A DNA stretch of 64,000 nt from Penicillus capitatus (Eukaryota > Plantae > Chlorophyta): positions 355,201 through 419,200 of the forward strand of contig OZ287711.1 in assembly GCA_965649825.1 (NCBI GenBank), given 5' to 3'. Made by a program: the position numbers and the translations under genes. The notes beneath the pieces are model-generated. The model had not been told where the DNA came from, made no database searches, and saw only the letters and a program-made list of their open reading frames with translations. The first letter of the stretch is position 1. Every line of letters starts with the position of its first letter. This document shows, piece after piece, positions 1 through 53,700 of this stretch.

Positions 1-3000
1 ATGGTCACCATTCCTGCAAGACGGATCTCGGCTGACGTTTCTGACACTTTATCGCCACAGGCTTTCTCGATCACCGGCATCAAGGTCTTCAGCGACTCCG
101 GTAAATCAGCAGCCAGACGTCCAGCCATTGCTGCCGTATCACGCCGCACACCGGCCGATCCGTTCTCGTACGTCTTTTTGATGATATCCAGAAGCGTCTG
201 TTGCTCGTCTGGAGCTTTCTTGGCCATGTACTCCATCGTTTTGACCGTTTCCTGTCGAACCTTGTCATTTTCTCCTGAAAGAAGACGCTCGAGTACTGGA
301 ATAAAAACAGACGCCTGGGACGTCTTCTCGTAGATAAAATGCCTCATAATCTGCACTGCCGTTCGGCAGACTTCTTCGTCTTCATCGTCACCGCCGCCGA
401 TGATCATCTGCAAGATAGACTCGAACTCGTCATCTGTCACCGATGACAGACTGCCGATCACTTCCAGCGCCGCCCGTCGTGCAGAGCTCTTTAGACTGCC
501 GATCGCTTCCTGGATCATCGGCAGCACGACAGGAAACAGTTCGCGCTTGTCTGTCAGGAGACTGATCACGGCTTGCAGTGCCGTATCCTGAACGACGGGC
601 CGATCGTCCTTGAACATCTCGGTAAACAACGGCGTGAATCTCTGGAAGAGATCGGGCACAAAGTCCAGCAGCTTTCGCATCATCTGTATCCCGACATCAC
701 GCGTCTCGAGATCCGAACTCTGGATGTTGTGCTGCGCCAGTTCCATCAAAATCTTCAAGTGCTTGTTAGATCTCTTGACAATGATGACGACGTCTCCGAA
801 TACATCGTATCCCAGTGCTTTCTTGACCGTTGTCGTTTCTGTCAGCTGATCGAGGATCTCGGGAACAGCGGAGAACAGTGAGGGGCATTGCTGAAGCATG
901 TGTCCCAGGATCTCGCGAAACTCTCGATGCTTCACATCTGTGTCTCTGATCAGCGAAACGGCAGCCTTGATGAGCAAAGCGACATCATCATCGCCCTCGC
1001 AGCAGTCTTTCTTTGATTGGGCATTTTCCAGCCCAGTCAGCCAAGCTTCGATGATGTGCAGCTTCAGGAGAAAATGCTGCAGACCGATGATCTCGATCGG
1101 TCCGTCGTCAAAGAATGACAGCAGCTCGGGGAGGTCTCCTTGTTCTGCCTCTGCCATGTGCTGTGCCAGGAACTGCAACGTTCTTTTATACCTGTTCAAG
1201 TACTTCTCTTCTCGCAAACAGTCGACGGCTGTCTTGCCGTTTGGCGAATCGAGATTCTTTAAGCTTTTCGCCACCCACGTCTTGGCAAAGTACTCTTGAA
1301 AGGTCAGATGCGGAAACTGATAGTCGACGCCTTCTTTCTTGAACAGCAAGAATCCGCTCCAGATCAATACTTCTCTGACGGTTAGGCGAGATACTCTTTG
1401 CTCGACGAAGCTCACACTGATGAGGATGTGATCTTTGCGCAGCGCATCGAACGCGATGACCTCAAGCGCCTCGAAGACATCTTCACGCTTGGCATTCCCA
1501 GCACGGAATCCCATTTTCTGTACGAAGCGATTCCAGATGTGGTTGACCATGTCGGAATACATGGCGGCCGGACTCCGCTGACTGAGGCTCACCCCCTCTA
1601 CCCAGAGGAAGCACAGGATGTAAGTCATCACTGGGATGTGCGCCACTTCCCACAGCGAATCCGTTCCTCTCAGAGCATCCATTAGACCTTGAGCGTCTGC
1701 GTCCGTTTTCTTGTGTCTGGTAACCATCTCTTTCTTCACGTACCTGTCGACCTGCTCGTCACTGAATCCCAGGCACTCCACTTCGAGATCGGTGAGTTCA
1801 CGCATTGTACGGAGGTTGTATGGACGCGTCAGCCAGAGGACTTTGCATTGCTTGCGCTTTGCTTCGTTCAGAATGGCTTCGGCTTTCTCGTCCACTTCAT
1901 CCCAGCCATCGATGATGAGCAGCGTCTTCTGGAGATCCAGGTGATCATCCACTTGGGCGCACAGCCCTTTATCAAATTCGCGATTTCTGGGAAAACATTG
2001 TCTGAGAATGAACGCCAGAAACTCTTTGGACGCGCCTTCGATGTCTTCCTTAGTGTTGAGCTCTCTTGCAGGCAGGACGTAAACAGCGTCGAATTCCTGG
2101 AACAACTGACCCCCTGCCCACATATACCCGATATACTTGCTGATGCATGTCTTCCCAGATCCTGGCTTTCCGTGAAACAAAATCGTTTGGATATCCTGCG
2201 CAGGTGAATTCTCCTTTACGATTCTCTTCCTGAACAGATCCTCCAGCGCAATCGAGTTTGCAACTCGCCGTCCAGTGGACTGGTCGTCTTTACTCTGATG
2301 CGAATCGGCCTGTTCCGACGATTGCTTCTTATCCTCCACGATCTGATAGAAAACAATGTGATGCTCCATTTCTTGCACATGCAGACGTAACTGACTGTCG
2401 AACAGAGAAGGCACCTTCAATACACAGGCGCTCGGTGAACACAAGATACTATAAAAGTGAAAAGCCTTACTGTGGCGAAGGCGATGCTTCGGTACCGACT
2501 CTTCAACAGTTCGACGTTTTCTCGTGCTTCTTGCAATGGTATGTGGTTGAACTCTCGACCGATCCGGGTGAAGAGAACTCCAGTGGGTTCTGAAGACGCG
2601 TGCACAGGTTCGCGGAGCTTCTCATCAAGCTGCTTGTTGCCCATCCATTGTTTCACGGCTTTCTTCACTGCCTCCGACTGGCCGGCATCGATCAGTTGCT
2701 GTGAGGATCTCGCCGCCGCCGCCGCCGCCTCATCGTTGCCTCTCGAATGGACGGTATGAAGACAGCAGAGCAGCGCTTCCACGATCTGTTTGTCTCTGAC
2801 CCATACGCTTTTCGTAACGGCATCCGCCAGAGCAAAGAGCTTCGATGACCCTGAGATGCGAACTTCGGCAGAATCTGGAGCCAGCGCGAGACGACGGAGC
2901 TCCTGCATGAGTCCAAAGAGCAACGCCTTGCCGTCTGCATTGAGTCGAATCTTCCAGACAGATTCTTCCACAGTCCTGTAGCTCTCCTCGAAAATCGGAA

Positions 3001-3988
3001 GATTCTGGTGATCCTCGACAGTCTTCCTGCCCGCAACGCTGAGAACTTGAAGCAAATCGTACCACTGTCGTTCTGCAACGTCTATGTTGTCAACCAGTTC
3101 TTTTAACTTTCCAGGTAGGTCTCCCAGCTTGTCTGGATCAATATCCAGTTTTGTTATCTGTATCATTGCGTGAGCGATGCGCAGGAACCCGCAGGTGAAC
3201 ATCTGCAAGAATTGGAAGAACTGCTCAGCGATAGTGGACTCTTCGTCTAGCTTCAGACGCTGGATGCCCTGTTCGATAAGTCTGAAGTAGTACAGGACGG
3301 GATAGTGCTTGCATGAGATTCCCATCGACGAGCGCTTTGTCCTGAGGCTCCGCTGGAAAGTCGTCTTCTCCTCGCTCACCACTTTCTCACACGCGATGCT
3401 TTGCATGAGGACAAAGACTTGATGCAGTGCCATGAATGTGGCCTCGTGTTTAAGGAAGTTCGCCTCCGTCAGCCTTGGCTTTGGACGCAGGCTGTCCATG
3501 AGTTTGTCCGCCACTTCTGTGAGCTCTGTCAGGTCTTGCTGGAAAACTTCGGGAGGCGTCCAGATCAACGACCTGTACAGCGCTTCTGCGACGCTTTCGT
3601 CAGCGAATTTATCGCCGGGAATCCAGTCACTCAGAAAGAAGACCACATCACGGAGCAGCTTCTTGTCGTCTTCCGTCCTATGTTTCATCTTGCAGAGCTC
3701 CACGTATTCCATGACGTTCCCAGCGTCGACATGCTTCTCTTTCGTCTCGCCGTAGAGGCGAAGACATTGCTGAAGGAGTTGTTCCGTTTCGCCCGCCGGC
3801 GAACCATTATAGATTTGGACGAGAGATGTCGTGGAGTCGACGCCCTTCTGTCGCATGAGAGCCCTCAGCTTCTTCTCGTCTGAAATGTCATCGCTCTGTC
3901 TTGCTGGCGGCGCTTCCGGACCGCTACCGTCTTCATGGTCATCCGCGCTGCCGATACTGGGTTCAACCTGTATCTCGTTGGTGGACAT
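1..3988 (-). CDS. NACHT NTPase with helical N-terminal domain and C-terminal HEAT-like repeats (NLR-like STAND protein); 3' end outside window
   Basis: Exon 3988-2471, intron 2470-2391 (GTAAGG..CAG, phase 0), then a frame with no stop in the segments I translated and no terminated ORF in the track, taken as open to base 1. Walker A HGKPGSGKT, Walker B LLIIDGWDE, LWLTRP sensor, winged-helix YQFPHLTFQEYFA, then HEAT-like helices (RRAALEVIGSL, EEVCRTAVQIM). Confidence 0.9.
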
Positions 3989-6320
3989 GACTGGAGTCTG
4001 CGAAGCACAAGAAATCTTTTGACGTAAGGAAAACGAACAGCGAACCGACCTTGGTGCGTAACGCGTTCAGTCGATGTATGCGATTTCCGCAGCAGGCGAA
4101 GATTTGGCGTATCGCTTTGATGGAAACATTAAACGTCGGATGTCAAGTACTGCTGAATATCAAACGCCAATGCGCAATCAGTCGCCATCTTCTGGCGGAT
4201 CTGTGACTTGGCCATTGAGGTACATCGTCTCCCCCGCAAGACCACCGTCAAGCGCGACGTCTCAAACATATCGACAAGCATTGCCCTCCAAGCAAATCCA
4301 GATCCTCGGATGTCGCTGTGTGTAGAGAGACAGAGGCTCGGCGTGATGTGACTCGGAACCTAATCGCACATACCGATCGGTTCGCCGAGATGACTTGAGG
4401 GAACGATAGCTTCAGCGTGGACGCCGCCTTCTGCTGCAAAACGCGAGCGCTTAGTGGGACTGGAAGACTCTTTGAGTTCGTTCGTCTTCACAAGTCCAGT
4501 CATCAGAATTCAGTGCCGATGCTCATCTGGCGACACGCCAAACACTGTGACACATCCTGGACGTTCTCGTAAAGAGCGATCACGTGTTACGAAGGACTCT
4601 CACCGCTGACACCTGGACTAAGCGTTTACGCAATCGTCGGCGCACGGAAAGTCGGCTCGCTTCTCATGCGTGATGCTGAACTGAACCGCCCGTCCATCGT
4701 GCCCTCTGCAGAAGTCTCGTAAGCGTTCCTTGCAGATCTTTCGCGTCAGCGTGAGTTCGGTTATGTAGATGGAAGGCATCTCTGTGCGACGCAAGAGTGT
4801 CGTTATCTGAAGACTCGGACGTTCATCTCTGCGCGGCCTCACCTTTTGGCTGCTTCGATACGATCATCGTTCCTCTGGCTTCGAATTCTGCCCACTACTC
4901 TGCTTGAAGTCCCTCAGTTGGGCGAGATCTCTCAGCAAGTCAGTCTGCATGAATGAACAGCCCGTGGCAGGGAGGTCCGTCATCTAAGCTGACAGCACCG
5001 CTGTCACCTCACGCCGAGTAGACTCCATCTACATACATCTGTTCTGAACGGTGGAAATGCAAAGACAGGCATAAACGTTGGCGGTTCGTCTCGAACTCGA
5101 ACGACGTGTGCTCGAACAGATTTCACTAACCATCTTGTCAGATCGTTGTTCGTCTGCAACGTTAGCGGTGCCCAAGATGGGATTGCTAAGAACAGAGAAG
5201 ACAGACGGTGTACAGAGTCCCGTTTTCAATGACAAACATGCTAATGTTAGTGTCCGTCGGGCAGCGAACGAGCTTAAGGCAAAAATGCCGAATTCCTAGA
5301 AAAGAAGTGAAGGTAATCCAGACATGCGCATCGATGTAATCCATCGCTTGCAACGCGAACTCTCCTGTTTGACGCCACAGTCAACTGGAAGACGAAAACC
5401 GAAGGTATCCACGTCTTTTTGCTCAGAACACATCTCACCTTCCACATGAAGTGTGTAGATTCCCGTTTGGTAAGCAGCATCGGACAGAGCGTGACTTTTT
5501 TGCACAGTCGGTGTGGCCATGACAAGGTCAAAGATGTGACAGGCAGTCTAATGAGTCCCACTTAAATGCGTAGATGTGGTGCGCGTAACGCGATGTGACT
5601 TGGATGCGCGAATTCGTCAGCACGGTCATCACTGAGGTGTAGGGTCTGTGTTTCTCGGAGAATTCTAACCGCCAACATATCCAGAGGCGCTTCCTGTCCG
5701 ACGGCATTCTCCATTTCCTCCGACTCGATCTGACGTCAGGCGACGTCACATCGTGAACTTCCAACCCCATAAAAGGCGGAACGCAGTGGTCATTCCCGTC
5801 TTTTTGTCGACGGCATTTCGTTTCAAGCCTCCGACTGGCGCAGATGCAAAACGCGCGACGGTGAACTTGTAAGGCAAGTCCATATACACTGTCGACGCGA
5901 CGCGGACGCAGTGTCTCCGTCGGCGCAGTTCTTCGCGTTCTCAGGTGTTGGAACCCCGAAGACGAACTCAGCCAGCCGACCTCAACGAAAGGTACGTTTC
6001 TGCCACTGTATGTTCACTCGGCGCTTGTCTTGGCTCCGTAGGTCTCTTCGCGAGCAGAAGTGGAAGACGGAAACGTGGTCGCAGAGAGAACACGGACGAG
6101 GGCGCCTTCGCGCCAAATTCTGAAGGTAAGTTCCCCGAACAGAGAGGGCTCTGAACTAACGCCAAGTTTCTTCTGCACGTAGGCGGCATTAGAAAAGTCC
6201 GTATAAAACAGAGTCCCGACCCAGCTTCGTGAGCGCAACAGGGAAGATGCAACGGAATCGTCACTTTACAAAACCAGGTGTTTTTCCTATGCTTTTTTTT
6301 GCAGAGACGAGAACGAAGGG

Positions 6321-6466
6321 TGACGGGCGGGCTTCGGCCTGCGAGGAGATACTCGCGGACGGTGACGGGCGGGCTTCGGCCTGCGAGGAGATACTCGCGG
6401 ACGGTGACGGGCGGGCTTCGGCCTGCGAGGACAGACTCGCGGACGGTGACGGGCGGGCTTCGGCCT
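6321..6466. repeat. 42-bp tandem repeat (about 3.5 units), each with a GCGGGC-TTCG-GCCTGC hairpin
   Basis: tgacgggcgggcttcggcct recurs at 6321, 6363, 6405, 6447. Confidence 0.95.
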
Positions 6467-8238
6467 ATCTTCCATGGTGGTGGCACCGCCTTTACAATTT
6501 TTCTTCACTTCTCTTCAACTTGCTTCCCTCGAGGACCGGTCTCGGTTCCCGACGGGATAGCCTAATTTTTGTCTGGCGTTCTATGCGCCAGACGAGCGCC
6601 GCGCGGCTGAACAGATCCTGTTCGATCGCGCGACAATCGTCTGGCATATACTCCGCCAGACAATATAACTCACCATAGATTTTAGTCATACGGATCTCTT
6701 TAGACGGATATCGACTGTGAAGGGCGAGCTGAAATCCCATCTACCTTCTTCGAGATCTTAGCTATTATCGAGAACATGATCTCGAAACCAAGTCGGAGGA
6801 AGGAAGGAAGGAAGGGCACTGCATGAGAACGCCGCAAGGCTTTTCTTTGAGAGAAGTACACGAGGTTTTCAACTTGGGACGTTAGTGTATTGCTTAAGCT
6901 TGTCACAAAGCGACCTAGGATGTAAGGAATCGGGAAACTACAGTTTGTCTAATTTGGTAAGCGCGTCTATGCATAGGATAGCATGCACTTTCTACTAGAG
7001 ATTCGCTCTGATTTCATATAGTTACCATCATCTCGCAGCATCTTGATGCCAGTCGAGAACGGCACGCGTTTGTAAGGCTAGCTGTTACAGAACGAATGGA
7101 TCTATCTATCTTTCGTAACACACACCTGTCCTGCGTCGAGCATGTTCGAGTGTGTAAGTCATTGGTTCTCAAACACACACATGAAACTGCCACAGCAACG
7201 CTTCTTTTCTGTCGACATCCGTCGACTTTGTCTCACAGCCGATAAGCTTCATTTCACGTCTCCTCGATTCGCCGAGAGTTGGCTTCATCGTTGTATGGAG
7301 ACCAAAGACTCCTCCTGCAAAAGAGATACAGCAGATGACGCAACAGAGGACCGAAGTTCCTCCAGCATCGCTAAACGGAAGCCGCTACGTCATCAAGTGT
7401 CTACTGGATAAGCCTCATTCACAGGACGATGTCTCTGGCCTCTTTGTCGTTACCAGTCTTTCCCTTGACTCGCTTTGAATTCTTGCTTGATTGACGGCAG
7501 ACCGAAGATGACTACGACAGCAAAGGAAGACAACAAATGATTCGCTGTGCTGCTGTATCGTGCACGCACGACGTGCGAGACAAACGCGTTTTAGATTCGG
7601 TGGACGCGGAGGTCGAAACGCCTGAGGCAACAGATGTTCAGAGTACATGGCACGTTCATCTTCGTGTCTCTCCTCTAGGTCACTCAGATTGTCAGTTCAC
7701 GCTTGTTCTCTTCGCTTCCGTGACTCGAACACGTTTGCTTCGCAAAGCGCGACGGACGTCGTGACTGCCATCTCCGATTCTCAACTGGCGCTAAGTGCTA
7801 AGTGTGATCGGACGACGTCCCTGAAGCCCGTGTATATGTAATCGCATGTCTCTAACAGATGTCTCTGGCGTACACGGATGCCGGCTCTGACCATGGCATT
7901 CATCCCCCAAAACACTGCTTACATAAGCAACGATGTGACTGTTCCAACATCCAAGAGACAAATGTATATGACAGATCGATGCAAAGAACGCACTGCATCG
8001 AAAGCCTTCAGCAAGCAGACAGCCTTTCTTTCATTCGTTGCGTTCCCCGTGCTGGCCACACTTAGGGAAGACTTGCATGACGACAATCGGCGTTTAATAG
8101 CCGGCAACAACAACACCCGTACTGTTAAAAAACGTTCCCCCGGTGCTCCAAGCACAGAAATGGCAGGTCTTCTCCCTCGACGCGTCATCAGAACAGGCAA
8201 GACAGACAACGACGTCGATCATCAGCCGCGGTGCTTAA

Positions 8239-9351
8239 TCAAGTGCGCGCCAACAGATCAACTTTGTGATGAGATCGTTTCACTAGCTCGTCATCGCCGA
8301 CTTTCTCCCATGATCCGTATTCATGATCTACGAAGATCTTTATGTCTCCAGCAAGCACCTTCCATACTTCAGTGACTTCTCTCTCGAACGTTTTGCGGAT
8401 TTTCTCCGTAACGATGAAGTTCACTTTAAATTCCTTCTGCAAGTCTTCGAATCTGAGGTCCACTGTTCTGCCAAGTGTCGCCCCGGTAATTGCATATGCA
8501 GTTCCAAACAGCGTAAAAACGATTCCCACTCCTGGCGCTGCCATAGCCGTGATTGCACCAGCGCCAGCAATAGCTGCACCAGTGCCAGTCACAAAACAAC
8601 GAATCATGCTGTAAGACTTAGCGTCTTTTTCGTCGACTTCGACGACAGGAACCACAACTGTACTTTTTCCGGTCGTTACTTCGATGTAGCTGTCATTAAT
8701 AATTTCACTCTTGGTTTCCTTAGGACCTGGCGTCCTCTCATATTTTCCAGCAAACAGCGGGCTATTAAAATCCAGTTCCTCTCTGGAAGGAATCAAGGTT
8801 TCGTAGAAACGGACGATGTCCGAGACGGCGTCGTCGTACAGACGACGAGTTTTGCCGTCGTCAAGGATCTTGGACACAAACCCTTGTAGGTGAAAGATCG
8901 CTACTGGTTCCTTCGTGCACTCGCTGTTAATCTCGCTTCGGGCTCGATCGAGTGTGGATCTGTTTTCCGAACGAAGCGCGACGACGATCCTCGGAAAAAC
9001 GACACTCATCTTCTGCAACAAGTCCTTCTCCAACGCCGACAGCGTCTGAATAATGACGATTGGCGGATAGAGATCAGCCTTGCCGGTTCCTGCGAGGAAT
9101 TGCAGTAACGTTCGTTCGGGAATGTCCGTTCCCCCGCTGTCGTCGAAGCCGACAGTGTCCACCATTCTGACGGCGCGTTTGCCAAAACGCATCGAATATC
9201 CCCGCGCCTCCTTCGTGTGCGAATTAAGACCGTCGGACACGATGTTCGGAAGCGCGCTTCCCTGGAGGATGCGATTGGCGGTGGAAATGAACTCGCCTTT
9301 ACCAATTCGCGTCCTCCCGACGATAAGTAAGACGGGATCTAAGGACCCCAT
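8239..9351 (-). CDS. AIG1/Toc34-like (TRAFAC) GTPase with C-terminal hydrophobic hairpin, paralog 1, intronless
   Basis: G1 GRTRIGKGE, G2 SHT, G3 DTVG; Gly/Ala hydrophobic stretch FVTGTGAAIAGAGAITAMAAPGVGIVFTLFG; likely ATG at 9351 (MGSLDP). Confidence 0.85.
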   Translation of the reverse strand: MGSLDPVLLIVGRTRIGKGEFISTANRILQGSALPNIVSDGLNSHTKEARGYSMRFGKRAVRMVDTVGFDDSGGTDIPERTLLQFLAGTGKADLYPPIVIIQTLSALEKDLLQKMSVVFPRIVVALRSENRSTLDRARSEINSECTKEPVAIFHLQGFVSKILDDGKTRRLYDDAVSDIVRFYETLIPSREELDFNSPLFAGKYERTPGPKETKSEIINDSYIEVTTGKSTVVVPVVEVDEKDAKSYSMIRCFVTGTGAAIAGAGAITAMAAPGVGIVFTLFGTAYAITGATLGRTVDLRFEDLQKEFKVNFIVTEKIRKTFEREVTEVWKVLAGDIKIFVDHEYGSWEKVGDDELVKRSHHKVDLLART

Positions 9352-9904
9352 CTGAGGATTTATCTGACACGAACGGAAGGGAGTAAACGAGACGACGGTA
9401 CGCGTCTGTCGACGCAAAAAGGAGAGGCGAAAAAGACGCAGAAACGCCGAACAAAGGCAAACCGAAAATCGTTCGGTGTTGTGTCTGACGCGACTTTATA
9501 CGTGAAACATACGACCTTGTCGAAAAAGTTCGCGTAGATGACTCTGAAATCGGGACACGTGGCAACTGTTTCATCTGGAAGGGGTGCGTTTGTGCACCGA
9601 TGGAATCCCGATACCTTTGCAGAAAAGAACGCCGAGTGTACTGTTCGCTTCGAAATGGCGCATCGACTGTCTTACTTGGGTGAGTTACTTCTTCGACTCA
9701 GGAAGGATGACTGTGTCTTCAGCACGAGCGCGCCAGAAGGTTCCTTGAACGAACGATGTAATGTAGCAAGTCTTGGGATGCGATTTTCAGTAGACGCGAC
9801 ACTCGTAGGACTACCTGTTCTAATGCGTCGTCCGAGGCATTTTAGGTTTCCACTACCTCTCATCAAATCGGTCGGTCCACGAGAAAAGCCGCATGTTTTG
9901 CGGC

Positions 9905-10909: not shown

Positions 10910-12600
10910 ATGAAGTACGTCTACTCCACGGAAATAACCTAATGCTCACAGTTGTGTGTCGACTCGTAGTTCCGATGCGTTGACGGATATGGAGAACAGG
11001 GGTCCTTGCGTAGGCGCTCCGCTCAGCGCCTTTCTCGAGCAGGAACACTTCTTGCTCAAAGTGTTGACGCACCTCGTGGAAGATAGTCTTCACGAATGCC
11101 GTCGCGTCTGTCGCCGGTGGCGCGACGCCTGTGGGAAGCTACCCGTCAAGCTAGGAAATGTGTATTCGGATGAGTTGCAAACAGCAGTTGACCTGTTCCC
11201 AGAAACCGAAAGGCTTGGCATGCGCGAATGGATTAGCAGTGTGGACATCATCGAGACGCACATCGTCCCACAGCTGCCGCGACTGGCGAATCTGAAAGAT
11301 CTTTCTCTTTATCTCGACGGCGTATCCATCGATCTGCGAAGCCTGGTCGCATGCTTTTCGTCGATGCAGCATCTTGGGTCACTCAGCTTGTATACTACGC
11401 ACGAGGACACATTGCATTGTTTCGTTCACGACCTGCGTTATCTGACGAAGCTGACTTCTCTGTTTCTCGACCATAACTGTGTCCTGCACAACGATCTGGA
11501 TCCAAACAGCTGTGTTCAAGGGCTCCGCCAGCTGACGATACCTTTCCACTTGCTGATCAACGAGCGGGGCGAGTTTGTCTTCCCCATGTTGACGGGACTT
11601 ACCAGCCTCGTTATCGGAGGCGGCAGAGACCCAGAGCAGTTCCCTTACAATCTACAGGTTTGCCAATCACTGGATCTGTTCGTCTGACAATTCGTTTGTG
11701 TTGTGGCAGAGCATCGTGCCTTGCGCTGCGAATCTACAATCGCTCAGTATACACACGACTTTCGTAGAGTTGTCTTTGACAGGGCCGTCGCCATGGAGAT
11801 CGTTCTTGCATCTGTCAAGCCTGACAATTGAAAGCTGCGACCAACGGGATGCGAGCTTCTTCCAAGCACTGCAGCAGATGCTCCACCTGACGAGTCTGGC
11901 CTTTACCGTTGCATCCGAAAGAGACAAGCAAGGCTTTGTGGACATCGTGCCCTCGCTCACAGGTCTCAGATCCCTTTCTCTTTCCCGTGATAACATTCCG
12001 GGTATCTCCTTTGAAATCGTGAATCGCCTCAGCGTTCTCTCGCAGCTCACACACCTGGATTTGAGCGATCTACTGGGAGACCAGCCTCTACGCCTCCCGA
12101 AGGGAATTGTTGATCTCAAGCTTTCTTTTGATCACTCTCTTCCGGAAGGCCTGTCCGAGGAGCTGGTCGGCTTGACCCAACTCACGTCACTGGCCCTGTA
12201 CAATTACCAAGAGATATATGCATTTCATTCGGATGGTATGACACCATCCCATTTCTTCAAGGAACTCGGGCAGTTGAAGACACTAACATGGTTCAATATC
12301 TGCATGGATCGCCCGTTTCTGGACGCTTTCGTAGCTTTGACCGGCTTGACGAAGCTACGCATTTATCAGATCGAGCCAAAGAGATTAGATCAAAAACTGT
12401 TCTTCCGGCAGTTGGGTCTGCTCTCAGATCTGAGGGAGCTTATGATTCCGTTTCCCTCCAAGTTGCTGGTCGACAGTGAAGTTGGACTGCCTCAAGGATG
12501 CCTGTCTAAGCTCAGGAAAATAGAGTGCTCTCCGATCCAACGCGCCAAAGATGTCGGTAATCCGGCAATGGCGAAAGCGTTTCCTTGTCTCCGATGGTGA
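10910..12600 (+). CDS. F-box-like + LRR (RNI/AMN1-like) protein, paralog 1
   Basis: Exons 10910-10914, 10970-11657, 11710-12600 (GT-AG introns of 55 and 52 nt, frame restored). FLLKVLTHLVEDSLHECRRVCRRW F-box-like motif; repeated LxxLxL units. Confidence 0.88.
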
Positions 12601-13949: not shown

Positions 13950-15671
13950 GTGTGCTTTAGTCGACGCTGCTCCGTGCGACACGACGGCCTGCACCTTTGT
14001 CGACAACAACGACCTGAACAGCCTTCAGCGTCTGTTCGGAAATCCGGCGCTTTGTACATGCACCTGTGATGACGCGGGAAATACACTGCTGCACCGCTCC
14101 GTTTCGTCAACGTGCAGTTTGTGCATCCATTGGTTGGTGAATTTTAACGGCTGTGACGTTGACGTTACGGACGACAGCGGCAACACGGCATTGCATGATG
14201 CCGCCGAACAGTGCTTGAATGTGCCGACGACAGTGAGCAATAACATCGTCGTTACCTCTGTGAACGTCGACCTGTCGGCCGAGTCCGAACCGGATGGCGA
14301 ACCGCGTAGGAGGACTCGTCAGCAATGGTTATTTACATAACTGTGGACGAGTACAGCAGACAGTTCTCGCGTTAAGTACCCCAGAGAAAGGTACGTCACA
14401 TCATTACGTGAGTCTCCCGTCACGCGTATTTCCAATTGTCTTCGGCTGGCGTGTCGCCACATGGACGGTTGGCACAACGGCAGCGTCCTCTCGGCAGGAG
14501 ACCCGAGGCGATGGCGGGCGCACCGTCACATGGGCGCACCCGCATTCCTGCTGACGCAAACTCCGAGGTACTCTCGCTTCACCGTTCTGCTGCTTCCCCT
14601 TGCGGCTCTGACACTGACAGGTACATGAGCGGCGGCGGACAGCACAGGAGAGAAAACGCAGCGGAAGCCTTTTGTCTCTTGCTGTTCCGAAGTACGGCTT
14701 CCGTCTTCCGGCACGGTTTTCGGTCTTCGTTCTCTTCCGAGGCGGCGAGTCGCGCACAAGGCAGCGAGTCGGCGACAGACCCTCGGTCGCGCTTCGACAC
14801 TCTGGGCGGCGAGTCGGCCCAGGCACGTGCACAGAACAACGCTCAGCCACCTCAGGGCGGCGAGCAGGCAACGCGCGGGGCGGGACTCGCAGACTCCTGG
14901 TGGACGGCGCAGAGAAACGGGAAACGACGATGGTGCCGTGAGTCGGTGAAAGCCGCACTCACGTAGGCTCGCTCCGAAACCATGTGAACGTCGACCTGTC
15001 GGCCGAGTCCGGACCGGATGGCGAACCGCGTAGGAGGACTCGTCAGCAATGGTTATTTACATAACTGTGGACGAGTACAGCAGAACAGTTCTGTTTAAAT
15101 ACCCCGGTCATTGGTCTGTCACGTCGTTACGTAAGCCTCTTCTCAGGCCTCTCGTCATGCGTTCTCCAGTGATATTCTGCTGGCGTGGCGCCACAAGGAC
15201 GGTTGGCGCAACGGCAGCGTCCTCTCGGCAGGAGACCCGAGGCGATGGCGGGCACCTTCACAACCTCGGCAAACATCGCATGCATCGCAGGTCCTGTTGA
15301 ACAATAGTGCAGTAAGAGAGCTTCGAAACGCGGAATGGGACGCTCCTCTCTGTATCGTCGGCCTTCTGGGCGGAAGCAGCGAATGTGGAACCGTCGCTCG
15401 CAGCATTATCGGCAAAACGAATACCATCCCCTTTAAAGCTTGTCCATGCAAAGAGTGCGGCAGCGGTCTCATTCCGCATGATGAAGCAGTCGACAGAAGA
15501 CTTCAAGATGTCGCAGACGTAAGCTATCCAAGTCTCGCACGTCGACTTTTATCTAGAGGTGTCGTTGGTGTTATTAGATTATCGGCCAGGACGGTGGGTC
15601 GCCCGACGCTTGCTCGGCTCTCGGCGCTTGTTTTTAATGCGGACGTCCTTTCGTACTCAGCTGCCCCTTAA
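13950..15671 (+). CDS. Ankyrin-repeat gene fragment with a TRIM inside its intron (possibly pseudogene)
   Basis: DDAGNTLLHRSV and DVDVTDDSGNTALHDAA ankyrin motifs (14065-14215). Donor GTGAGC at 14233 and acceptor CAG at 15290 join in frame to VLLNNSAVRELRNAEWDAPL. Start not located. Confidence 0.5.
14259..15262 (-). mobile_element. TRIM-like miniature LTR retroelement (LTRs 14259-14530 and 14983-15262)
   Basis: Both repeats start TGTGAA and end TCACA; exact 5-bp TSD ACCTC at 14254-14258 and 15263-15267; minus-strand TGGTTTCGGAGC next to the LTR resembles the tRNA-iMet PBS TGGTATCAGAGC; no recognisable coding domain. Confidence 0.85.
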
Positions 15672-16782
15672 GCAGCACGCCATCGTCTGAATGACAACGC
15701 CTCTTTTCTTTGCACACCGCATGAGTGCTTCTGCTAGAAGTTCCTTGATTTTATTGTTGCATTATTTTTATTCTATTCGCTTGGGTCGACGCGTTCACCA
15801 CTGGAGCTTTTCATGCATCTTAGACGACGTTTAAGAATACCGCCGGTCCTGAGACCGTTCGAACGCATTCGTTTCTGCGCGCCGACGATGTCGACGAACA
15901 GCATGTCTTATCGGTGAAATCGCTGCGACTACATCCTCCGAATAGCGCATTCACTCGCTGACCAAAGAAATGCGCACACTCTGGCCGTGTTCGAGCAATC
16001 TTGGCCGTAAAAGGGCCATGACCAATGCGTCTTGACAGGGCGGGTGGCGCAAGCGTTGGAGATGCAGACGGCGGCAGTTGCCTCAAGGGCATCTCTCTTA
16101 CGTCCCGAGATCGGAATACGGGCACGAGAGGACATTCATTACATGGCAAGCAGACGGAGCAGGTTTCGCCTGTCTTTTAATCTCTGGTGATTTCCTTAGC
16201 GTGAAGGAAACGGATATACTCTTTGCCGTCCTGCAGGATCGCGTCTCGTCTCGAACTGAATGACGTGACGGGTCTTTGGTGACAACCGCGGGCTTACTTT
16301 AAGGTCGGTCGACTGTTTAATCGTGTCCTCTCTCAAGGCGTATTGGACCTCGGGCACTTGTCGCAAATCGACTCCGCGAGAGGACACACGGGTTCACTGC
16401 GGAGGAGTCACTGCCATGATGTGACCCGGGACATCACGAGGGTGACTCTGCCACCCCGCGATGAACCTGTTGTCGATTCTGTGAGCAGAGTTCGTCCAGT
16501 TTCATCCTGTTTTCTTTGATGCGTTCGTTCGCGCGATGTGGGCGCGGCGATCTGGACGTCCCTCTGTAGCTATACGTGGTTTGCATGCCATTGGAGAGGG
16601 ACTGCGCACCCGTCTCCGCTGCCGGATGAATGATACAAACGTCACTTTCAGAGAAACGAAGCTATCGGCAACTTGCAAATTGGAGTCGCGTGTTAACATC
16701 ACAGTCGGTCGCAGCGCGTCATAAGGTTTCTGTTGCTGTTTTCGCCGCGACCGTCGCAAGCGTTCGTTTTTCAGAGCTAACA

Positions 16783-18566
16783 ATGTCCTTGTCACGGCTG
16801 GCGAGACGGCAAGACGTTGTGGATACTTGCTCCGTATCCAAGCCCTCGACGGTGGTTGGCAGCCTGGGTGCACTTCTCGAACACGAGTATTTGCTGCTCA
16901 AAGTGCTTGCGTACGTCGTGGACGACGGCCTTCACGAGTGTCGCCTCGTCTGTCGACATTGGCGTGAAGCTTGCCGGAGGCTGCCCGTCAGAATTCGGGC
17001 AGACGTCTCCTCTATCGGCGTTACCGAACTGGTGAGACAGGTGACAGAGAAGTTTCCGGAGGCGGCATCTCTGTGCCTCCTCGACAGGAGCCGAAAGAAA
17101 GGACTGGGTGTCGATGCCCTGCCCTGGCTGTCGGGACTCACAAAGCTCCACACATTGCAGGTGCCGTTTCGACCTGGACATCAGGTCGCCGAGGGACTGC
17201 GTCCGATTCTGCTGTCGATGGATCGCCTCCGATCGCTCTCTTTCCAAGCGGATGACGCGACCACCCACTCCGTCTGGATGGACACCTTGAGACGCCTGGT
17301 GCACCTCACGTACCTGGATCTCTACGCGCCGTGCAACATCCATGCCTTGCCTGAACCGATCACAGAGCTCCACAGACTGCTGCATTTGAGCGGCAACGCT
17401 CGGAGCCTGGTCAGGAGTGACGGGCGGCTCGTCTTCCAGTCGCTGACCCGACTCACGGGACTCAGATTCAGCGACGCACCTCATCTGGGACCACAGGACT
17501 GGACAGCAGTACACTTGCAGGTGCGATAGGCGCCGCACGAGCATTCTGAAACGCGCTGTGTCTGTTCTAGTCGTTCCTTCCCTATGCCGCGTCGCTGCGG
17601 TCACTGGACATCGAGGCGTGCACTGCCAGACGTTCATTCCAGGGATGGCTGTTGCTGTCGTCCTTTTCGAGTCTGGAGAAGCTCGTCACGAGTTGCTTCG
17701 CCCTGAGGGACGCGGACTTCCCCGTCGCCCTCGTGGAGCTGAGTCGCCTGACTGAAGTGACGATCGCCGGCGGAATGCATCCGGACGGTCAAGTCTCCGT
17801 GGATCCCGTGCTCGCGCTCACTGGACTCAAATCGCTCTCGATCGATCCGTGCAGAGACATCGTCTCCAGACGACGCATGGCAGACTCACTGGCGGCCATG
17901 ACGCAACTGACGCGTCTCGCCGCGACGGGATCGATCTGCGCAATGTCCCTGTGCGGAACGCGTCTGCGTCATCTGCCTGAAATGGTCGACCTTGAGATCA
18001 CCATCTTCAGGGACTCGCAACTCCATCTGTCGCACGCCTTGGCCCGCATGCCCAACCTGGTGACGCTGCGAGTCAGCAATCGAGACAGCAGTCTCCTGCT
18101 GCTATCCAGTGCTTTGCAGCCGCTCAAGAAGCTCAAGACGCTGGAACTGTGGAAGGTCGACGTCGAGTCGGATTTTCTAAGCGTACTCGGGACGCTTCCG
18201 GAGCTGACGGAATTGAGTTTCGTCCCGAAGGTCACTCGCTTCGACGTTCATCGTTTCTACGCTCAGCTGAGCCTCCTGTGCAATCTGAGAGTGCTCGGGA
18301 TGCCTAGCTACTGGCCAGTGATTGGATTCTTGATCCGACCAGCGGCGTGTCGTGTGCCACGTCTTCAACGCATCCTCTTCATCGCAGACGGGGATTCGGT
18401 GAAGTTCTGTTTCGCTGGACTGCGACTGATTTGTACAGAGAAGTCATTGCCGAGATCCGTACTGTTTCGAACGTTTCCATGCCTCCGCAGTATTCACTTC
18501 TTGAATGCCACGACCTTTAAACGCAACCTCGGCGACAACGCCGGACAGATCTACCGTCTCGTATGA
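16783..18566 (+). CDS. F-box-like + LRR protein, paralog 2
   Basis: YLLLKVLAYVVDDGLHECRLVCRHW; intron 17521-17570 (50 nt) joins HLQ to SFLPYAASLRSL; LRR units downstream. Confidence 0.85.
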
Positions 18567-20229
18567 GCTGCTCAGTATGCTATGTGTTGTTTCTAATCGC
18601 TAGACCCTCGCGTCCTGACTGTGCTCTTCCTTATCGTACCGAAGAACTCATCGAACGAAGCTCATTTGTGATTCCTGCAATGACCCGTCTGTCAGTCATG
18701 TTCCTGAGTACTCAGTGCTGTGGGTTTTTCTTTGAATGTCGTGTCGGCGACGCGCAGATCCACGAGCGGATGCGTCATCGATTTCGCAGGATGCGGTAGG
18801 CAACGCAAAATCAGACATCAGATACGGTGCTCGCCTCCAGGCGGGTGTCAGAGCACGAGTATCGACACCGTCTCCCCAAACACGTTTGCCGCGCCCGGAG
18901 ATTTCAGCGACACGACGGAGGAATCTGAGCCGACTCCACCTGCGTCTATGCCGCGAGTCGTTGGAGTCAGCTGCCGCGTGTTGTGCTCCAAGGCGATGTC
19001 ACACATTCGGCTGATGGCCGATACCGTCGATTCATTACCCGTTCCCGTTTGCCGACAAATCCACGAAGCTTAAAGTCAGTTATCGTTTGTTCCATCCAAC
19101 TCGGATCACACTGACGACATCGTTCAGTTCGCAAATGCGACGAGAAGAAGTCGCGGAAACTTATAACATTCTCGTGCACTCCGAACAGAGGTCGGCGGCG
19201 TGTTTCGCAGACGAACTGGGTTTTGATGTGTGATAGCGACACGACAGTCGTGACGTTTTGGCTTTCGCTGCTCTGCTGGACATTGGTTGGATCCGTATGT
19301 GGCTTCTTAGCAACGGAAATTCTCGTCAGAGTCGTGATACGACGTCTTTCAGCAGACTACTGCACGAAACTTCAGAATCTTTTACAGTTGGTTTCACACA
19401 GGTGTACCACTAAACAACCTAAGAAAGAGGTCTGTCCAATAAATCTCGTCCACCATCGTGCTGCCGTGGTCATCGATTGGAAACAGAGACATCACAGAGA
19501 GGTCTTCATCGTTGGACGATAACAGCATTAATAAGACTACCATCACGACAATCGCTTCGCTTCCGTGTGTTGAGTGAGCTCCGCGTACAGTACTGTTTCG
19601 ATCTGTCTTTCTGTACCGTGCTGATTCCTGATCCGATCTCTATTCTAAACACAGAGGGAAGAAATAACTGCTAAAACCCTCCGCGTACGGGCCATAGCAC
19701 CTAGCTGGGAGTTTGTCACCGTGAGCCATTGACCAGCCACAATCAACTAACAAAACAGAATGGCCGATAATAAAAACACCACATTTTGTTAATGTTTACG
19801 GTAACTAGAAAGACGAGCATTCTTGAGCAATGGTGAGATCCATCATAGCTCAACGCATCTCGTGAACAGACGAGGTGCGTGTTACAGCAATCTCTGGGTC
19901 GGAGAAAACAATTCGTCCACATAAGCGTCAAGCACTGGATAACTATTAGAAAAGCGAGGAACGAGTCCGAAAAGTGCCTGCTGATAAGCAAAAACACCTA
20001 TAGTTCGATTTGGATAAGAACTCATCACCATTCGGACTCGAGGTAAGATTCGCCGCCACCTGTCATTTGTCGTCATTCGCTTGCAGTCTTCGAACGATTT
20101 CTTGGTTTGTTTCTTCTCCGTACCCATAGCAGTTCGGCAAGTAGGCCGGAATTGTTCGACTTTTGATCACGCTGTCGGCAAATCCATTGCCACCCACTGC
20201 TGGAGAATTCGGTTGCATCATCTGACTCA

Positions 20230-22590
20230 TTCCATCCCGTATATTCGTGTTCTTCGCACGATTGATCCAAACCGATTTGCACTGGTGCTAGTTGCACCCC
20301 GCTGAAGCGTATAGGCGTGTCCAACGTGTAAAAAGGTCAACGGTGCACAGAACGTAGCGTGACTGACGATTGCTAGCCATCCGACTAGGAGAATACAATC
20401 CACCGCCTTGATTAAAATGTTGCCAGGTGAGACGATTTTTGGAGCTGAAGGCTCTTGTCGTGCGAAGGCTTGTCGTTGTGAGCAGGTGCATATCCACGGC
20501 GTGATTCTATCCGGCAAATTTGGAAAGAACTCGAGTCTGTGCGCTTCGAGTTGAGTGTTTTGTATCAGAGATGACCGACCGGCATCATTCTGTGCCGTTT
20601 TCATCCACTGTAAGATCTCTGGTGAGTTGATGCGGCAAGGGATCTCTGCATCTGTATAAACTTTGTGTTCGAGTCGATACCAGCGGAGTTAGAGGCCCTG
20701 TTCTGGGATCGTTCTGGCATGACAACGCGAAGGATGGCGATCATGTCAAATGCGACCATCTGACAAATATCGGATTACGCTAAACGACATTGGCGGCAAA
20801 AAACAAACAGAAAGAAAACCGACAGGAGACCGTCGCGTTTTCGCCTTCGCCGACAAAACACCGCTACAGCTCAGATGAGGTAAGTCCACCACGCCGGAAT
20901 CAGCTCAATGCTCACAACTGCGTATCGAGTCGCAGCTCCGATGCGTTGACGGGTATGGAGAGCAGTGATTGCCACCGAGTTGACCCAGTCACTGGATCTG
21001 AAAAGACCCTGAGTGACCTTCTCGAGCAGGAATACTTCTTGCTCAAAGTACTGGCGTACGTTGTTGAGGATGGTCTCCACGAATGCCGTCGCGTCTGTCG
21101 CCGGTGGCGCGACGCCTGTGGGAAGCTACCCGTCACGCTACACAGAGTGTTTGCGGATACACTACAGAAAGCAGCAGACCTATTCCCAGAAGCCGAAAGG
21201 CTGAGCATGCGTGAATGGATTAGCAGTGTGGACATCATCGAGACGCACATCGTCCCTCAGCTGCCGCGACTGGCGAATCTGAAAGATCTTTCTCTTTATC
21301 TCGACGGCGTATCCATCGATCTGCGAAGCCTGGTCGCATGCTTTTCATCGATGCAGCATCTGCGGTCACTCAGCTTGTATACTACGCACGAGGACACATT
21401 GCATTGTTTCGTTCACGACCTGCGTTATCTGACGAAGCTGACTTCTCTGTTTCTCGACCATAAATGTGTCCTGCACAACGATCTGGATCCAAACAGCTGT
21501 GTTCAAGGGCTCCGCCAGCTGACGATACCTTTCCACTTGCTGATCAACGAGCGGGGCGAGTTTGTCTTCCCCATGCTGACGGGACTTACCAATCTCATTA
21601 TCGGAGGCGCCAAAAACCCAGAGCAGTTCCTTTACAATCTACAGGTTTGCCAGTCGCTGGATCTGTTCGTCTGACAATTCGTTTGTGTTGTGGCAGAGCA
21701 TCGTGCCTTGCGCTGCGAATCTACAATCGCTCAGTATACACACGACTTTCGTAGAGTTGTCTTTGACAGGGCCGTCCCCGTGGAGATCGTTCTTGCATCT
21801 GTCAAGCCTGACAATTGGAAGTTACGTCCGACGAGATGCGAGATTCTTCGAAGCACTGCAGCAGATGCGCCAGCTGACGAGTCTGACTTTTATTGTCGCA
21901 TCCGACAGAGACAAGAGCGGCTTTCTGGAAAGCATGCCCTCGCTTACAGGTCTCAGATCCCTTTCTCTTTCCTATGTCGGCATTCCGGGTATCTCGTATG
22001 AGATCACGAAACGTCTCAGCGTTCTCTCGCAGCTCACGCGGCTGTGTTTGAGTGATCTACTGGAAGACCAACCTCTGCGCCTCCCGAAGGAACTCGTCGA
22101 TCTCTGCCTTTTTTCTAAGTACTCCTTTCCAGAAGACCTGTCTGAGCAGCTGGCCGCCCTGACAGATCTTACGTCACTTAAGATGCACAGTTACGAAGAG
22201 CTGCATTTGTTTCATTCTGATGGTATGAGACCGATCCGCCTCTTCAACGAACTCAGGCAGTTGAAGAAACTATCATTGCGGAATGTCTGTCTGGATCGCC
22301 CGTTTCTTGACGCTTTTGTAGCTTTGACCGGCCTGATGGAGCTGCGCCTCGGTGGACGCACCGAACAAATGGACCATCGCTTCATCTGTCAACAGTTGAG
22401 TCTTCTTTCAGATTTGAGTGTTCTGGAGATTCCGTATCCCAAGCTGTTGGTCGACAGCCAAGCTGGAGTACCACAAGGATGCATGCCCAAGCTCAGGAAA
22501 ATCGTTCTCCCTTTAGAATACATCGTCATAGATGACGACACGCACTTGGCAATGATGAAAGCATTTCCTTCTCTTCGAAACGTGGAATGA
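20230..22590. repeat. Inverted duplication with about 59733-62000 (upstream region plus F-box/LRR gene)
   Basis: Shared upstream blocks (gaaggctcttgtcgt, cttcgagttgagtgttttg, catctgacaaat) and near-identical gene core on the opposite strand. Confidence 0.75.
20875..22590 (+). CDS. F-box-like + LRR protein, paralog 3
   Basis: Exons 20875-20879, 20936-21644, 21697-22590; FLLKVLAYVVEDGLHECRRVCRRW; central part nearly identical to paralog 1. Confidence 0.88.
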
Positions 22591-24102
22591 TTTATTAGAC
22601 CACTGCCTAATAAACAGTCACTTCCTCTAAAATTTGAGTATCTAATATCCCGCTGTCCTGCAACACCTGTTCATTATCTCGGCTCTGTTCAAGATGAAGT
22701 GGGTATTGTCAATTTGGCTGGATAGATCGAACCCTCAACCCAATACAAATGCCCTAAAAAACTTGCTTGCGTAAAAACGGCTGTGTCATTTATCTTACTT
22801 TACAATTGCGTACACGCTGTACGACGAGTTCAACAGACCAGTGTTCGGCGGATGCGGATTACGACGGTAGAGAAACGCGGTTCTGAATGGAAGTGCAGAC
22901 GACACTCGGCGACAGTGGACTTCCACGTCGGCATACTGTCGTTATAAATCCGGTGCTTTGAAGCCAGTTTCCGTAACATAAAGTCTGCTCCGTGTTCGTA
23001 CTCAGGTGTTTAGATGTGATCCTCATCCTTGGCTAAGTGTTGCGGCCTTTTCTTCAAAACAGCTACCGTAATCAAGGAGTGATCACATCACGGACTGTGA
23101 ACCCATCGTCGCCGCCGGATGAATGATACAAACGTCAATTTCAGAGAAACGAAGCTATCGGCGACGTGCGATTTGGAATCGCGTTTTTACATCGAAGCTG
23201 CTTGCAGCAAGTCTTAGGACATTTTTGTGTGTTCGACTGGAATCGCAATCCATGTCGACAACGCGTTTGGTTTTCTCTGTGTCGGCAATTGGCAGTGATG
23301 AAAACGCCTGATGGGTTCGAAAGCGACGTTCTTTGCTTCTCTTTGCATCATCCGTTCCCGTATACGAAACCGCTGATCACAAATACAGGAGAAGACAGTG
23401 CGGAATGCTCTTTTGAGTTTCGCTCTAGCCGAGTTACGATCAATGAAAATGAGGAATATGTCAAGACGCATCCTTACGAATAGTTTCGTCGGTGCTGCTG
23501 TCATTTTCTGCCTGACTGTTGTGGGTCTCTGTCGCGATTTACTCTTTCGTCGGACGATCTTCAAGTTCGAAACTGCATTGCAGTTGGTCCGGCCACCCGT
23601 GGATGAGAACGATAGAGAGCTCAGCTAGAAATCTGGCACTCTCGCCTAGGTGTCGCATCATCAGACTGGGAAGTCAAGTACGCTTTCCGTGACTCCGATC
23701 ATCTCAGTGCACGCACGCTGTTTTGCTTAAAAGGCGAATAGAAAGGAGACACACAACTTTGCATCATCGCCTTAGACATATTGACATTTCGGTCGAACGA
23801 AACGCTGGGCAGTGTCGTCGTCCGACTGTACACAGAGTGAGAAGACATTCCTTGTCGACTGTTTCTAGGAAGCGACACGTCGCAGAGATGGTAACAGCTT
23901 ACTCGAACGGAAGTGTAAGTCAGCAGCTGTAACTGATGAGGAAAGAACAATTCTCGGGAAGCTATAGATTGTGACGAGAATGGACACGAGAATGAAGGCA
24001 ATCGTGGAGTGACAAGGCGGTACTTCTTCGAATCGATGTGCGATTTGTTAAAAGTCATACATCAAAAATGCTCGGTCTGGCCTCGTTCGTTAATGGAGGT
24101 GT

Positions 24103-26729: not shown

Positions 26730-26898
26730 GAGGACGGACGCTGACGGGCGGGCTACGGCCTGCGAGGACGGACGCTGACGGGCGGGCTACGGCCTGCGAG
26801 GACGGACGCTGACGGGCGGGCTACGGCCTGCGAGGACGGACGCTGACGGGCGGGCTACGGCCTGCGAGGACGGACGCTGACGGGCGGGCTACGGCCTG
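26730..26898. repeat. 34-bp tandem repeat (about 5 units), each with a GCGGGC-TACG-GCCTGC hairpin
   Basis: tgacgggcgggctacggcct recurs at 26742, 26776, 26810, 26844, 26878. Confidence 0.95.
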
Positions 26899-36372: not shown

Positions 36373-36552
36373 CTATTATTAGCAAACCTCCGACCTATTA
36401 TTAGCAAACCTCCGACCTATTATTAGCAAACCTCCGACCTATTATTAGCAAACCTCCGACCTATTATTAGCAAACCTCCGACCTATTACCGGCAAACCTC
36501 CGACCTATTACCGGCAAACCTCCGACCTATTACCGGCAAACCTCCGACCTAT
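36373..36552. repeat. 22-bp tandem array (8 units) CTATTATTAGCAAACCTCCGAC
   Basis: 22-bp period; first 5 units TTAG variant, last 3 units CCGG variant. Confidence 0.97.
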
Positions 36553-38019: not shown

Positions 38020-38135
38020 TATTATTAGCAAACCTCCGACCTATTATTAGCAAACCTCCGACCTATTATTAGCAAACCTCCGACCTATTATTAGCAAACC
38101 TCCAACCTATTATTAGCAAACCTCCAACCTATTAT
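38020..38135. repeat. Second 22-bp array (about 5 units), same unit and orientation as 36373
   Basis: ctattattagcaaacctccgac repeats, last two with ccaac. Confidence 0.97.
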
Positions 38136-53691: not shown

Positions 53692-53700
53692 CTCCCCCTC
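53692..53700 (-). promoter_or_regulatory. Polypurine tract
   Basis: GAGGGGGAG on the minus strand, 4 nt before the 3' LTR. Confidence 0.8.

Follow-up and report, generated by a model that had tools for sequence, protein, structure and literature searches.

A paraseptin-like GTPase-fold family with a predicted beta-ribbon stalk in the giant-celled green alga Penicillus capitatus

Membrane GTPases of the septin/GIMAP/Toc group matter in immunity, organelle biology and the cytoskeleton, and their mechanisms are poorly understood. GIMAP2 carries two C-terminal hydrophobic segments, is bound to lipid droplets and forms a GTP-dependent oligomer; like the GBPs and atlastins, it works by G-domain self-association on membranes. 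Here we describe a protein family of the green alga Penicillus capitatus (Chlorophyta) in which a GTPase-type G domain is followed by a C-terminal half of new architecture, predicted to be a beta-ribbon stalk with a membrane-inserting tip and without a structural relative. Three paralogs, all on the minus strand (from here: W1, W2 and W3), occur in the stretch of 64,000 nt that was analysed (contig OZ287711.1, positions 355,201 to 419,200, assembly GCA_965649825.1; from here: the window).

We read W1 and its paralogs as membrane-anchored, oligomerising, paraseptin-like P-loop NTPases of the septin/AIG1 class of TRAFAC GTPases, which are genomically linked to NACHT-HEAT and F-box/LRR genes, and put the probability of this reading at about 0.5. 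Known neighbours of the family, all of other architecture, are protist GIMAPs (PMC8857920) and algal septins with transmembrane domains (PMC11238149). In the literature searched on GIMAP/AIG1 proteins in diatoms, on NACHT proteins in Ostreobium and on pseudo-GTPase P-loops, the family did not turn up.

The paralogs and their G domain

The three genes and the parts of the W1 G domain are as follows.

8239-9351, minus strand: W1, intact single-exon gene of 370 aa (open reading frame; 100% identical to database protein P0001)
8791-9351, minus strand: W1 G domain, residues 1-187, Ras-like alpha/beta fold of the septin/AIG1 class (AlphaFold, Foldseek, hhalign and PDB profile search)
9292-9318, minus strand: W1 variant Walker A GRTRIGKGE, with Gly at the Ser/Thr position and Arg at P-loop position 4 (hhalign)
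9214-9222, minus strand: W1 switch I, SHT
9148-9159, minus strand: W1 G3/Walker B DTVG, residues 65-68 (invariant columns D65, T66, V67 and G68; aligns to AIG1-like DTPG)
24103-25398, minus strand: W2, intact paralog of 431 aa with GKG P-loop, longer tip and a KDTKE-rich insert (open reading frame, alignment)
29735-30108, minus strand: W3 N-terminal part with GKS P-loop, ATG at 30108, ending at a long terminal repeat (LTR) insertion (open reading frame, alignment)
28661-29393, minus strand: W3 C-terminal part with the end of the G domain, stalk, tip and C-terminal module, frame still open (open reading frame, alignment)
29394-29729, no strand assigned: solo LTR of 336 bp splitting W3, with TG...CA ends and the 5-bp target-site duplication CGATG (99.1% identity to the LTRs at 53352-53687 and 55479-55814)

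The window is intron-poor DNA of eukaryotic type with low coding density and a GC content of about 0.52. W1 lies in an open reading frame at 8239-9417 (minus strand), and its likely start is the ATG at 9351, which matches the paralog starts. Its motifs follow each other in the order GRTRIGKGE (residues 12-20), SHT, DTVGFD, a T/E/K/V-rich segment, the hydrophobic stretch, IVTEKIRKTFEREVTEVWKV and EYGSWEK; the layout of W2 is the same except for a longer hydrophobic stretch, and the C-terminal end reads EYG(S/P)WEK among the paralogs. The initial annotation had described three paralogs with a GTPase domain, T/E/K/V-rich segments flanking a Gly/Ala stretch, and a conserved end, and all of these features are present. 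It had also listed the third copy, at 28661, as broken. This is the case, and the N-terminal part at 29735-30108 (minus strand) belongs to the same copy in addition to the piece listed. The two pieces are in different frames, both are open, and the reading frame is continuous over the empty insertion site. W3 is a gene inactivated recently by the LTR, because the lesion is a 336-bp insertion with a target-site duplication and not a frameshift. An intron was ruled out as the origin of the gap, since an AG acceptor is absent and the gap is a solo LTR with target-site duplication.

W1 was modelled by AlphaFold with an alignment of 14 sequences, yielding a mean pLDDT (predicted local distance difference test) of 68.8. 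Residues 1-185 of this model show the secondary-structure order beta1-alpha1-beta2-beta3-alpha2-beta4-alpha3-beta5-alpha4-beta6-alpha5. Foldseek ranked GIMAP7 (3zjc) and GIMAP2 (2xtp, 2xto, 3p1j) first among PDB structures for the G domain (E 4e-6 to 6e-5), with EF-Tu, Arl and G-alpha close behind, hence a modest discrimination; dynamin-superfamily structures were not found among the top 50 matches. A profile made from 14 diverse family G domains (A4) was matched to an AIG1/MMR_HSR1-bearing profile by hhalign at a probability of 99.1% and E 1.3e-18, spanning G1 to alpha3. Here GRTRIGKGE was paired with GPTGVGKST and DTVGFDD with DTPGFDD, and the motifs DTVG and SHT, which are invariant or nearly so in the family, align to DTPG and S.T of AIG1-bearing proteins. 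Against PDB sequences, profile A4 reached Cdc10 (E 1.3e-4), Der (2e-4), Septin-9 (2e-3), GIMAP4 (0.011) and Toc34 (0.8); among the profiles tried, only this more diverse one reached septins and Der. The match to Cdc10 and Septin-9 spans only G1 to about alpha3, and a septin unique element was not detected.

No window copy reached a Pfam threshold when W1, W2 and both W3 pieces were scanned by hmmscan. At E up to 1, none of these sequences matched Pfam AIG1 (PF04548), and the window proteins did not match Septin (PF00735). Dynamin_N and GBP likewise gave no Pfam match for the window proteins, whose sole GTPase-family match was MMR_HSR1, below the cut-off at E 0.003-0.12. Taken together, the N-terminal 187 residues are a GTPase fold homologous to AIG1/MMR_HSR1-type G domains, and within the TRAFAC GTPases this domain is placed, as a divergent member, in the septin/AIG1/Toc ('paraseptin') neighbourhood. 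The Pfam test puts it outside the AIG1 family. The earlier designation as AIG1-like is true at the superfamily level only.

A word-indexed search of 5.8 billion proteins returned 13 homologs, all of them from ENA metagenome assemblies and none with Pfam domains. The exhaustive HMMER profile search of 1.84 billion representatives gave 51 matches, about 43 of which are true members having both halves; the rest (E > ~1e-8) match in G1-G3 only and are ordinary GTPases annotated as AIG1, MMR_HSR1 or Septin. Sources were looked up for 20 members. Long contigs of two ENA assemblies account for all of the close members and environmental contigs of 1-8 kb for the distant ones; the sole member among the 20 traced to a named species is CAB9527989.1, an 'expressed unknown protein' of the diatom Seminavis robusta. 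A PADLOC scan of the window proteins gave nothing significant, and no match better than E 0.15 was returned from the PDB sequences for a shallow full-length profile (A1). The description of the family as unrecognised thus holds for Pfam, PADLOC and the PDB sequences, with only 51 profile matches among the 1.84 billion representatives.

The architecture is common to the 13 close homologs and the ~43 family members. Because it is kept in the homologs and the pairwise ratio of non-synonymous to synonymous substitution rates (dN/dS) is below 1, the layout of the three paralogs is not due to chance. Among pairs of six paralogs, the Nei-Gojobori dN/dS was ~0.15-0.3 for the G domain, compared with 0.25-0.5 for the stalk and C-terminal module; the values are rough, since dS is ~1 and close to saturation. 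In the same comparison the tip is the fastest-evolving part of the protein. Judged by its sequences, the family is new, constrained and narrowly distributed.

The replacement of the P-loop Ser by Gly that had been noticed is real: W1 and W2 have GKG and W3 has GKS. GKG occurs in 19 of 22 family P-loops (16 GKGE, and three GKGT in P0029, P0043 and P0045), also in members only 20-37% identical to W1, while GKS was found only in W3, P0010 and P0055. The family-wide Walker A reads G(R/K)TRxGKG(E/T). Little or no variation is seen in the Walker Lys, the Arg at P-loop position 4, the switch I Thr and DxxG. GKG is an old, selected signature of the family rather than recent decay, since it is present in 19 of 22 loops including distant members and the domain is under purifying selection. 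Its long retention beside a few GKS members offers a natural experiment on P-loop change versus nucleotide use. The region of G4 is not covered by the hhalign comparison, as the alignment of the N-domain profile stops before beta5. Beyond beta5 follows a VVAxR..D region, which we take to resemble the G4 stretch of GIMAPs; its Asp is not conserved in distant members.

The absence of this conserved Asp and the Gly in place of the Mg-coordinating Ser/Thr in 19 of 22 loops would both be expected if the proteins were pseudo-GTPases independent of nucleotide, with Mg and NTP binding lost and the G-like domain acting as the interaction or oligomerisation module of a membrane-anchored adaptor, perhaps together with the NLR-like or F-box neighbours described below. 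The distant members P0024 and P0029 moreover have N-terminal hydrophobic leaders which, if real, would place the domain where GTP is scarce, but these may be gene-model artefacts like the extension of P0010. True pseudo-GTPases have usually lost several of the motifs in question, whereas purifying selection here has kept all four of Walker Lys, P-loop Arg, switch I Thr and DxxG, and GKS members coexist. Adenylate kinases are active with a GxxGxGKGT Walker A, and the GKGT loop is found in three family members. We consider a nucleotide-independent function rather unlikely, though a serious rival. An active, dimerisation-stimulated NTPase is plausible by analogy, because of the GKGT loop of adenylate kinases and because GBP1 and atlastin possess a catalytic P-loop Arg at the position matching the invariant Arg of the family.

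The C-terminal half

Downstream of the G domain, the following parts of W1 were delimited.

8638-8718, minus strand: outgoing strand of the predicted beta-ribbon stalk, residues 212-238 (both AlphaFold runs)
8470-8598, minus strand: hydrophobic Gly/Ala-rich tip, residues 252-294, with central AAPGVG and a predicted helix-turn-helix (composition and AlphaFold)
8380-8460, minus strand: returning strand of the predicted beta-ribbon, residues 298-324 (AlphaFold)
8257-8379, minus strand: conserved C-terminal beta module, residues 325-365, motifs VWKxLAG..I.IF..EYG.W (alignment and AlphaFold)

A second AlphaFold run was performed with W1 residues 186-370 and an alignment of 27 sequences including distant members (mean pLDDT 79.5). 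The strand boundaries were identical in both runs and define two antiparallel strands of 27 residues (212-238 and 298-324), with pLDDT 93-98 in the C-terminal model. The predicted ribbon measures ~9 nm and leaves and rejoins a small conserved beta module beside the G domain. This module was predicted with pLDDT 94-98 and contains the most conserved C-terminal columns, namely the motifs VWKxLAG, I.IF and EYGPW; in the C-terminal alignment, W145 is present in 22 of 27 sequences and W163 in 23. The expected placement of the hydrophobic segment on a beta-stalk is thus reproduced by both models, which put it at the tip of a long two-stranded ribbon.

Over the Gly/Ala stretch between the strands, two helices were predicted at low confidence (positions 66-86 and 88-107 of the C-terminal model). 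In W1 this stretch comprises 43 uncharged residues, with a Kyte-Doolittle maximum of 1.76 and a G+A fraction of 0.47. Most algal members have Gly/Ala-rich tips of 25-58 uncharged residues with a central (A/L)PPV, and several distant members have 11-19 residues of Trp, Gly and Leu, e.g. WFLLGAWGW. Thr, Val and Ile abound in the long strands, which are T/E/K/R-rich and polar on both faces; the alternating hydrophobic face of a transmembrane beta-hairpin was not found in them.

The stalk could be a prediction artefact, the T/E/K/V-rich flanks being disordered or helical linkers in a small GTPase of the ordinary kind, anchored by a hairpin or tail as GIMAP or Toc34 are. Alignments of 14 and 27 sequences are shallow, the predicted template-modelling score reached only 0.54-0.56, and a correlation of arm lengths gave nothing. 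On the other hand, two runs with different inputs returned identical strands at pLDDT 93-98, the flanks are high in beta-branched residues (52% beta-branched or aromatic residues in the outgoing strand) and contain a conserved Pro, which a helix would not accommodate, and ~70 conserved residues follow the hydrophobic segment, which is hence no tail anchor. We regard this explanation as very unlikely.

Foldseek comparison of the C-terminal half with the PDB and the viral BFVD gave no significant match, and no relative of this half was detected. The top PDB fold matches were pore-state lysenin, MAC/perforin and aerolysin-type proteins, all non-significant (E >=0.009, probability <=0.35, template-modelling score <=0.2, and a root-mean-square deviation of ~20 Å or more nearly throughout the matches listed). 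This resemblance to pore toxins was rejected as geometric only, reflecting the presence of very long hairpins.

These proteins are nevertheless the sole fold neighbours of the C-terminal half, and a pore-forming effector had been proposed in the initial annotation. In such a case the proteins would be membrane-permeabilising executioners that oligomerise and breach a target membrane or their own, either by hairpins assembled into a beta-barrel or by Gly/Ala helices assembled into a glycine-zipper channel. Small-xxx-small motifs are abundant in the tip, and NLR-like receptor genes are adjacent, as for executioner domains in other systems. However, besides the insignificance of the structural matches, the long strands are not amphipathic, the hydrophobic part is predicted to be helical, W1 and W2 lack a signal peptide, the tip of distant members is a loop of 11-19 residues only, and no motif is held in common with the NLR N-terminal domain. 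The pore-forming proposal finds no positive support besides these non-significant matches of geometry, and we judge it unlikely.

Gene neighbourhood and possible function

W1 is flanked by two genes of other families.

1-3988, minus strand: NLR-like gene with a ~505-aa N-terminal domain, a GT-AG intron of ~75 nt (~2395-2469), then NACHT and HEAT; runs off the window start
10956-12600, plus strand: F-box and LRR gene adjoining W1 in divergent orientation, two open reading frames joined by a GT-AG intron of ~52 nt (Pfam F-box and LRR_14)

Copies of the family also occur in further database segments (L001-L007), on long-read contigs of metaMDBG style. The order GTPase, 3-4 kb of intervening DNA and NLR on the same strand is found in the window (W1), in L001/L002, in L004 (second copy) and in L006, while in L005 the NLR is located immediately upstream of the GTPase instead. 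This linkage survives divergence to 50-60% protein identity. F-box/LRR genes flank most family copies, and at least six family copies or fragments are located on a single contig of 236.7 kb. The persistent linkage between GTPase and NLR is suggestive of functional coupling. A motif common to the GTPase and the NLR N-terminal domain, of the type involved in amyloid signalling, was looked for and not found.

According to the reading we favour, that of a membrane-anchored, oligomerising NTPase, the G domain would be cytosolic, because a signal peptide is lacking and the N-termini of W1 and W2 run straight into beta1. The tip would insert into a membrane or the surface of a lipid droplet as a hairpin or loop, and both of its ends would be on the cytosolic side since it sits between two strands. 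The G domains would then dimerise or oligomerise, probably in a nucleotide-dependent manner, to scaffold, tether or remodel the membrane. That the pathway served is one of immunity or conflict is suggested only by the linkage to NLR and F-box genes, the turnover of copies and the fast evolution of the tip.

Several observations weigh against this reading. W2, W3 and the L007 copy have no adjacent NLR, and en-bloc segmental duplication could explain the NLR linkage alone. With Gly at the Mg-coordinating position, nucleotide binding is putative, and an NKxD-type G4 Asp is not conserved after beta5 in distant members. The tip helices have a pLDDT of ~50, and two algal members, P0014 and P0028, have a weak tip or none. 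A lone two-stranded ribbon of 27 residues is unlikely to be stable, and the true state may be oligomeric, unlike the model. The correlation of arm lengths across members was r = -0.18, in a crude test with ill-defined tip boundaries.

A broader proposal, which we consider improbable at present, is a new module of algal innate immunity. The family would be its membrane arm, each GTPase-like gene functionally coupled to the NACHT-HEAT receptor located 3-4 kb downstream as well as to neighbouring F-box/LRR genes; activation of the receptor would lead to G-domain assembly, ribbon and tip would remodel or breach a membrane, and GKG and GKS proteins would relate as regulator and effector, like the GMS and GKS IRGs. 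If true, the family would provide a GTPase-coupled membrane effector of a hitherto unseen fold. The linkage to NLR and F-box/LRR genes is in any case a lead into the cell-autonomous defence of a giant-celled green alga, a subject that to our knowledge has been little studied.

The NLR-like family is greatly expanded in this alga, with dozens of paralogs on Mb-scale contigs. For the ~505-aa N-terminal domain there was no Pfam match, and the NACHT-HEAT protein has its closest named relatives in Caulerpa lentillifera. The window contains six F-box and LRR genes, at 10956-12600, 16630-18566, 20790-22590 and 31197-33058 on the plus strand and at 39505-41193 and 59733-61416 on the minus strand; at the four paralog junctions aligned, a conserved GT-AG intron of ~52 nt (CAG/GTTTG...CAG) lies between the two open reading frames.

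Decayed copies of the GTPase family were also observed elsewhere: an internally deleted remnant in L001/L002 (5210-5463) and a frameshifted copy in L007 (10001-11325; P0013 plus a 236-aa open reading frame), which is situated among ordinary genes of housekeeping type. An MTPAP-like gene of housekeeping type, beside a family pseudogene on a sister contig, has its best named relative in Ostreobium quekettii (42% identity), followed by land plants. Best matches of this kind, and not a phylogeny, make a siphonous green alga of the Bryopsidales type the most likely host. A segment of 12.6 kb (14102-26701), including W2, recurs in L003 (8698-21296) with 99.85% identity and is an allele or a very recent duplication. 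Eight of the 19 differences fall in the 1.3-kb W2 gene, six of them non-synonymous, and none in 14102-21892. Beyond the shared segment, L003 lacks W3 and has fragments of an RPA-like OB fold instead.

The LTR that splits W3 is of the same type as those of a small retroelement of 2,463 bp at 53352-55814, with LTRs of 336 bp, TG...CA ends and the target-site duplication TCCAG. It has a single gag-like open reading frame at 53826-55424 (minus strand), and pol was not detected in it. The near-identity of the solo LTR (99.1%) suggests recent activity of the element. A partial fourth LTR-like match is at 57770-57893.

A region of ~2 kb is 78% conserved between the W1 and W3 copies (6308-8418 versus 26763-28843). 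Inside or beside it, downstream of W1 and W3, are near-perfect minisatellites at 6319-6466 (42-bp unit) and 26729-26898 (34-bp unit) with the common core GACGGGCGGGCT.CGGCCTG. Other near-perfect minisatellites were found at 36373-36553, 38020-38136 and 59567-59759; two of these are built of a common 22-bp unit and one of a 26-bp unit. A GC-rich block at ~42000-51000 (GC 0.62-0.67 versus 0.52 around it) has long overlapping open reading frames in several frames and only weak Pfam matches of TPR and Nup133-N-like type; a single large plus-strand gene with several exons may account for it. Rfam and tRNA scans of the whole window found nothing. Relics of dinoflagellate spliced leaders were looked for without success, and a dinoflagellate origin was therefore dismissed.

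Comparison with known systems

The GIMAP/AIG1 proteins share with the family the best structural match of the G domain (GIMAP7, GIMAP2), sequence kinship at the profile level, a DTxGxxD switch II and hydrophobic membrane segments. They also form lineage-specific, expanded gene clusters with a suspected immune role. Unlike them, the family remains below the Pfam AIG1 threshold, has GKG instead of GKS in the P-loop and is without a helical C-terminal extension; its hydrophobic segment lies within the chain, on the end of a predicted beta-ribbon, with a conserved beta module after it.

Septins gave the best sequence-profile matches in the PDB and have the paraseptin-type layout from G1 to G3. Septins associate with membranes, as is predicted for the family, and there are pseudo-GTPases among them. 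Septins of algae and ciliates that have transmembrane domains are found in Groups 6A and 7 (PMC11238149). The family differs from septins in lacking a Pfam Septin match, in an alignment that extends only from G1 to about alpha3 and in its C-terminal architecture.

The beta-pore-forming proteins (lysenin, aerolysin-type, MACPF) resemble the family in their very long two-stranded hairpins and head the Foldseek list, but these matches are non-significant, the strands of the family are not amphipathic, and its hydrophobic element is predicted to be helical and located at the tip.

Adenylate and other NMP kinases have a GKG(T) loop, as do P0029, P0043 and P0045 in the GKGT form, so Gly is compatible with catalysis. 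They are of another fold class, without the switch I Thr or DxxG, and are not homologous at the family level. The IRG GTPases likewise combine two P-loop classes in one clustered family, GKS and GMS there and a GKG majority with GKS here. It is the Ser that is altered in our family and the Lys in GMS; homology is limited to the GTPase fold, and evidence for regulation of one P-loop class by the other, as in IRGs, was not found in the family.

With atlastin, mitofusin, BDLP and GBP there is no sequence or fold match. The G domain of the family is small and without the inserts of the dynamin superfamily, and its stalk is predicted as a beta-ribbon, where theirs is a bundle of helices. What these proteins have in common with the predicted structure of the family is an analogous plan of a G domain, a stalk running outward and returning, and a distal hairpin or paddle for insertion into the membrane, to which atlastin and GBP1 add the Arg at P-loop position 4 (GxxRxGK).

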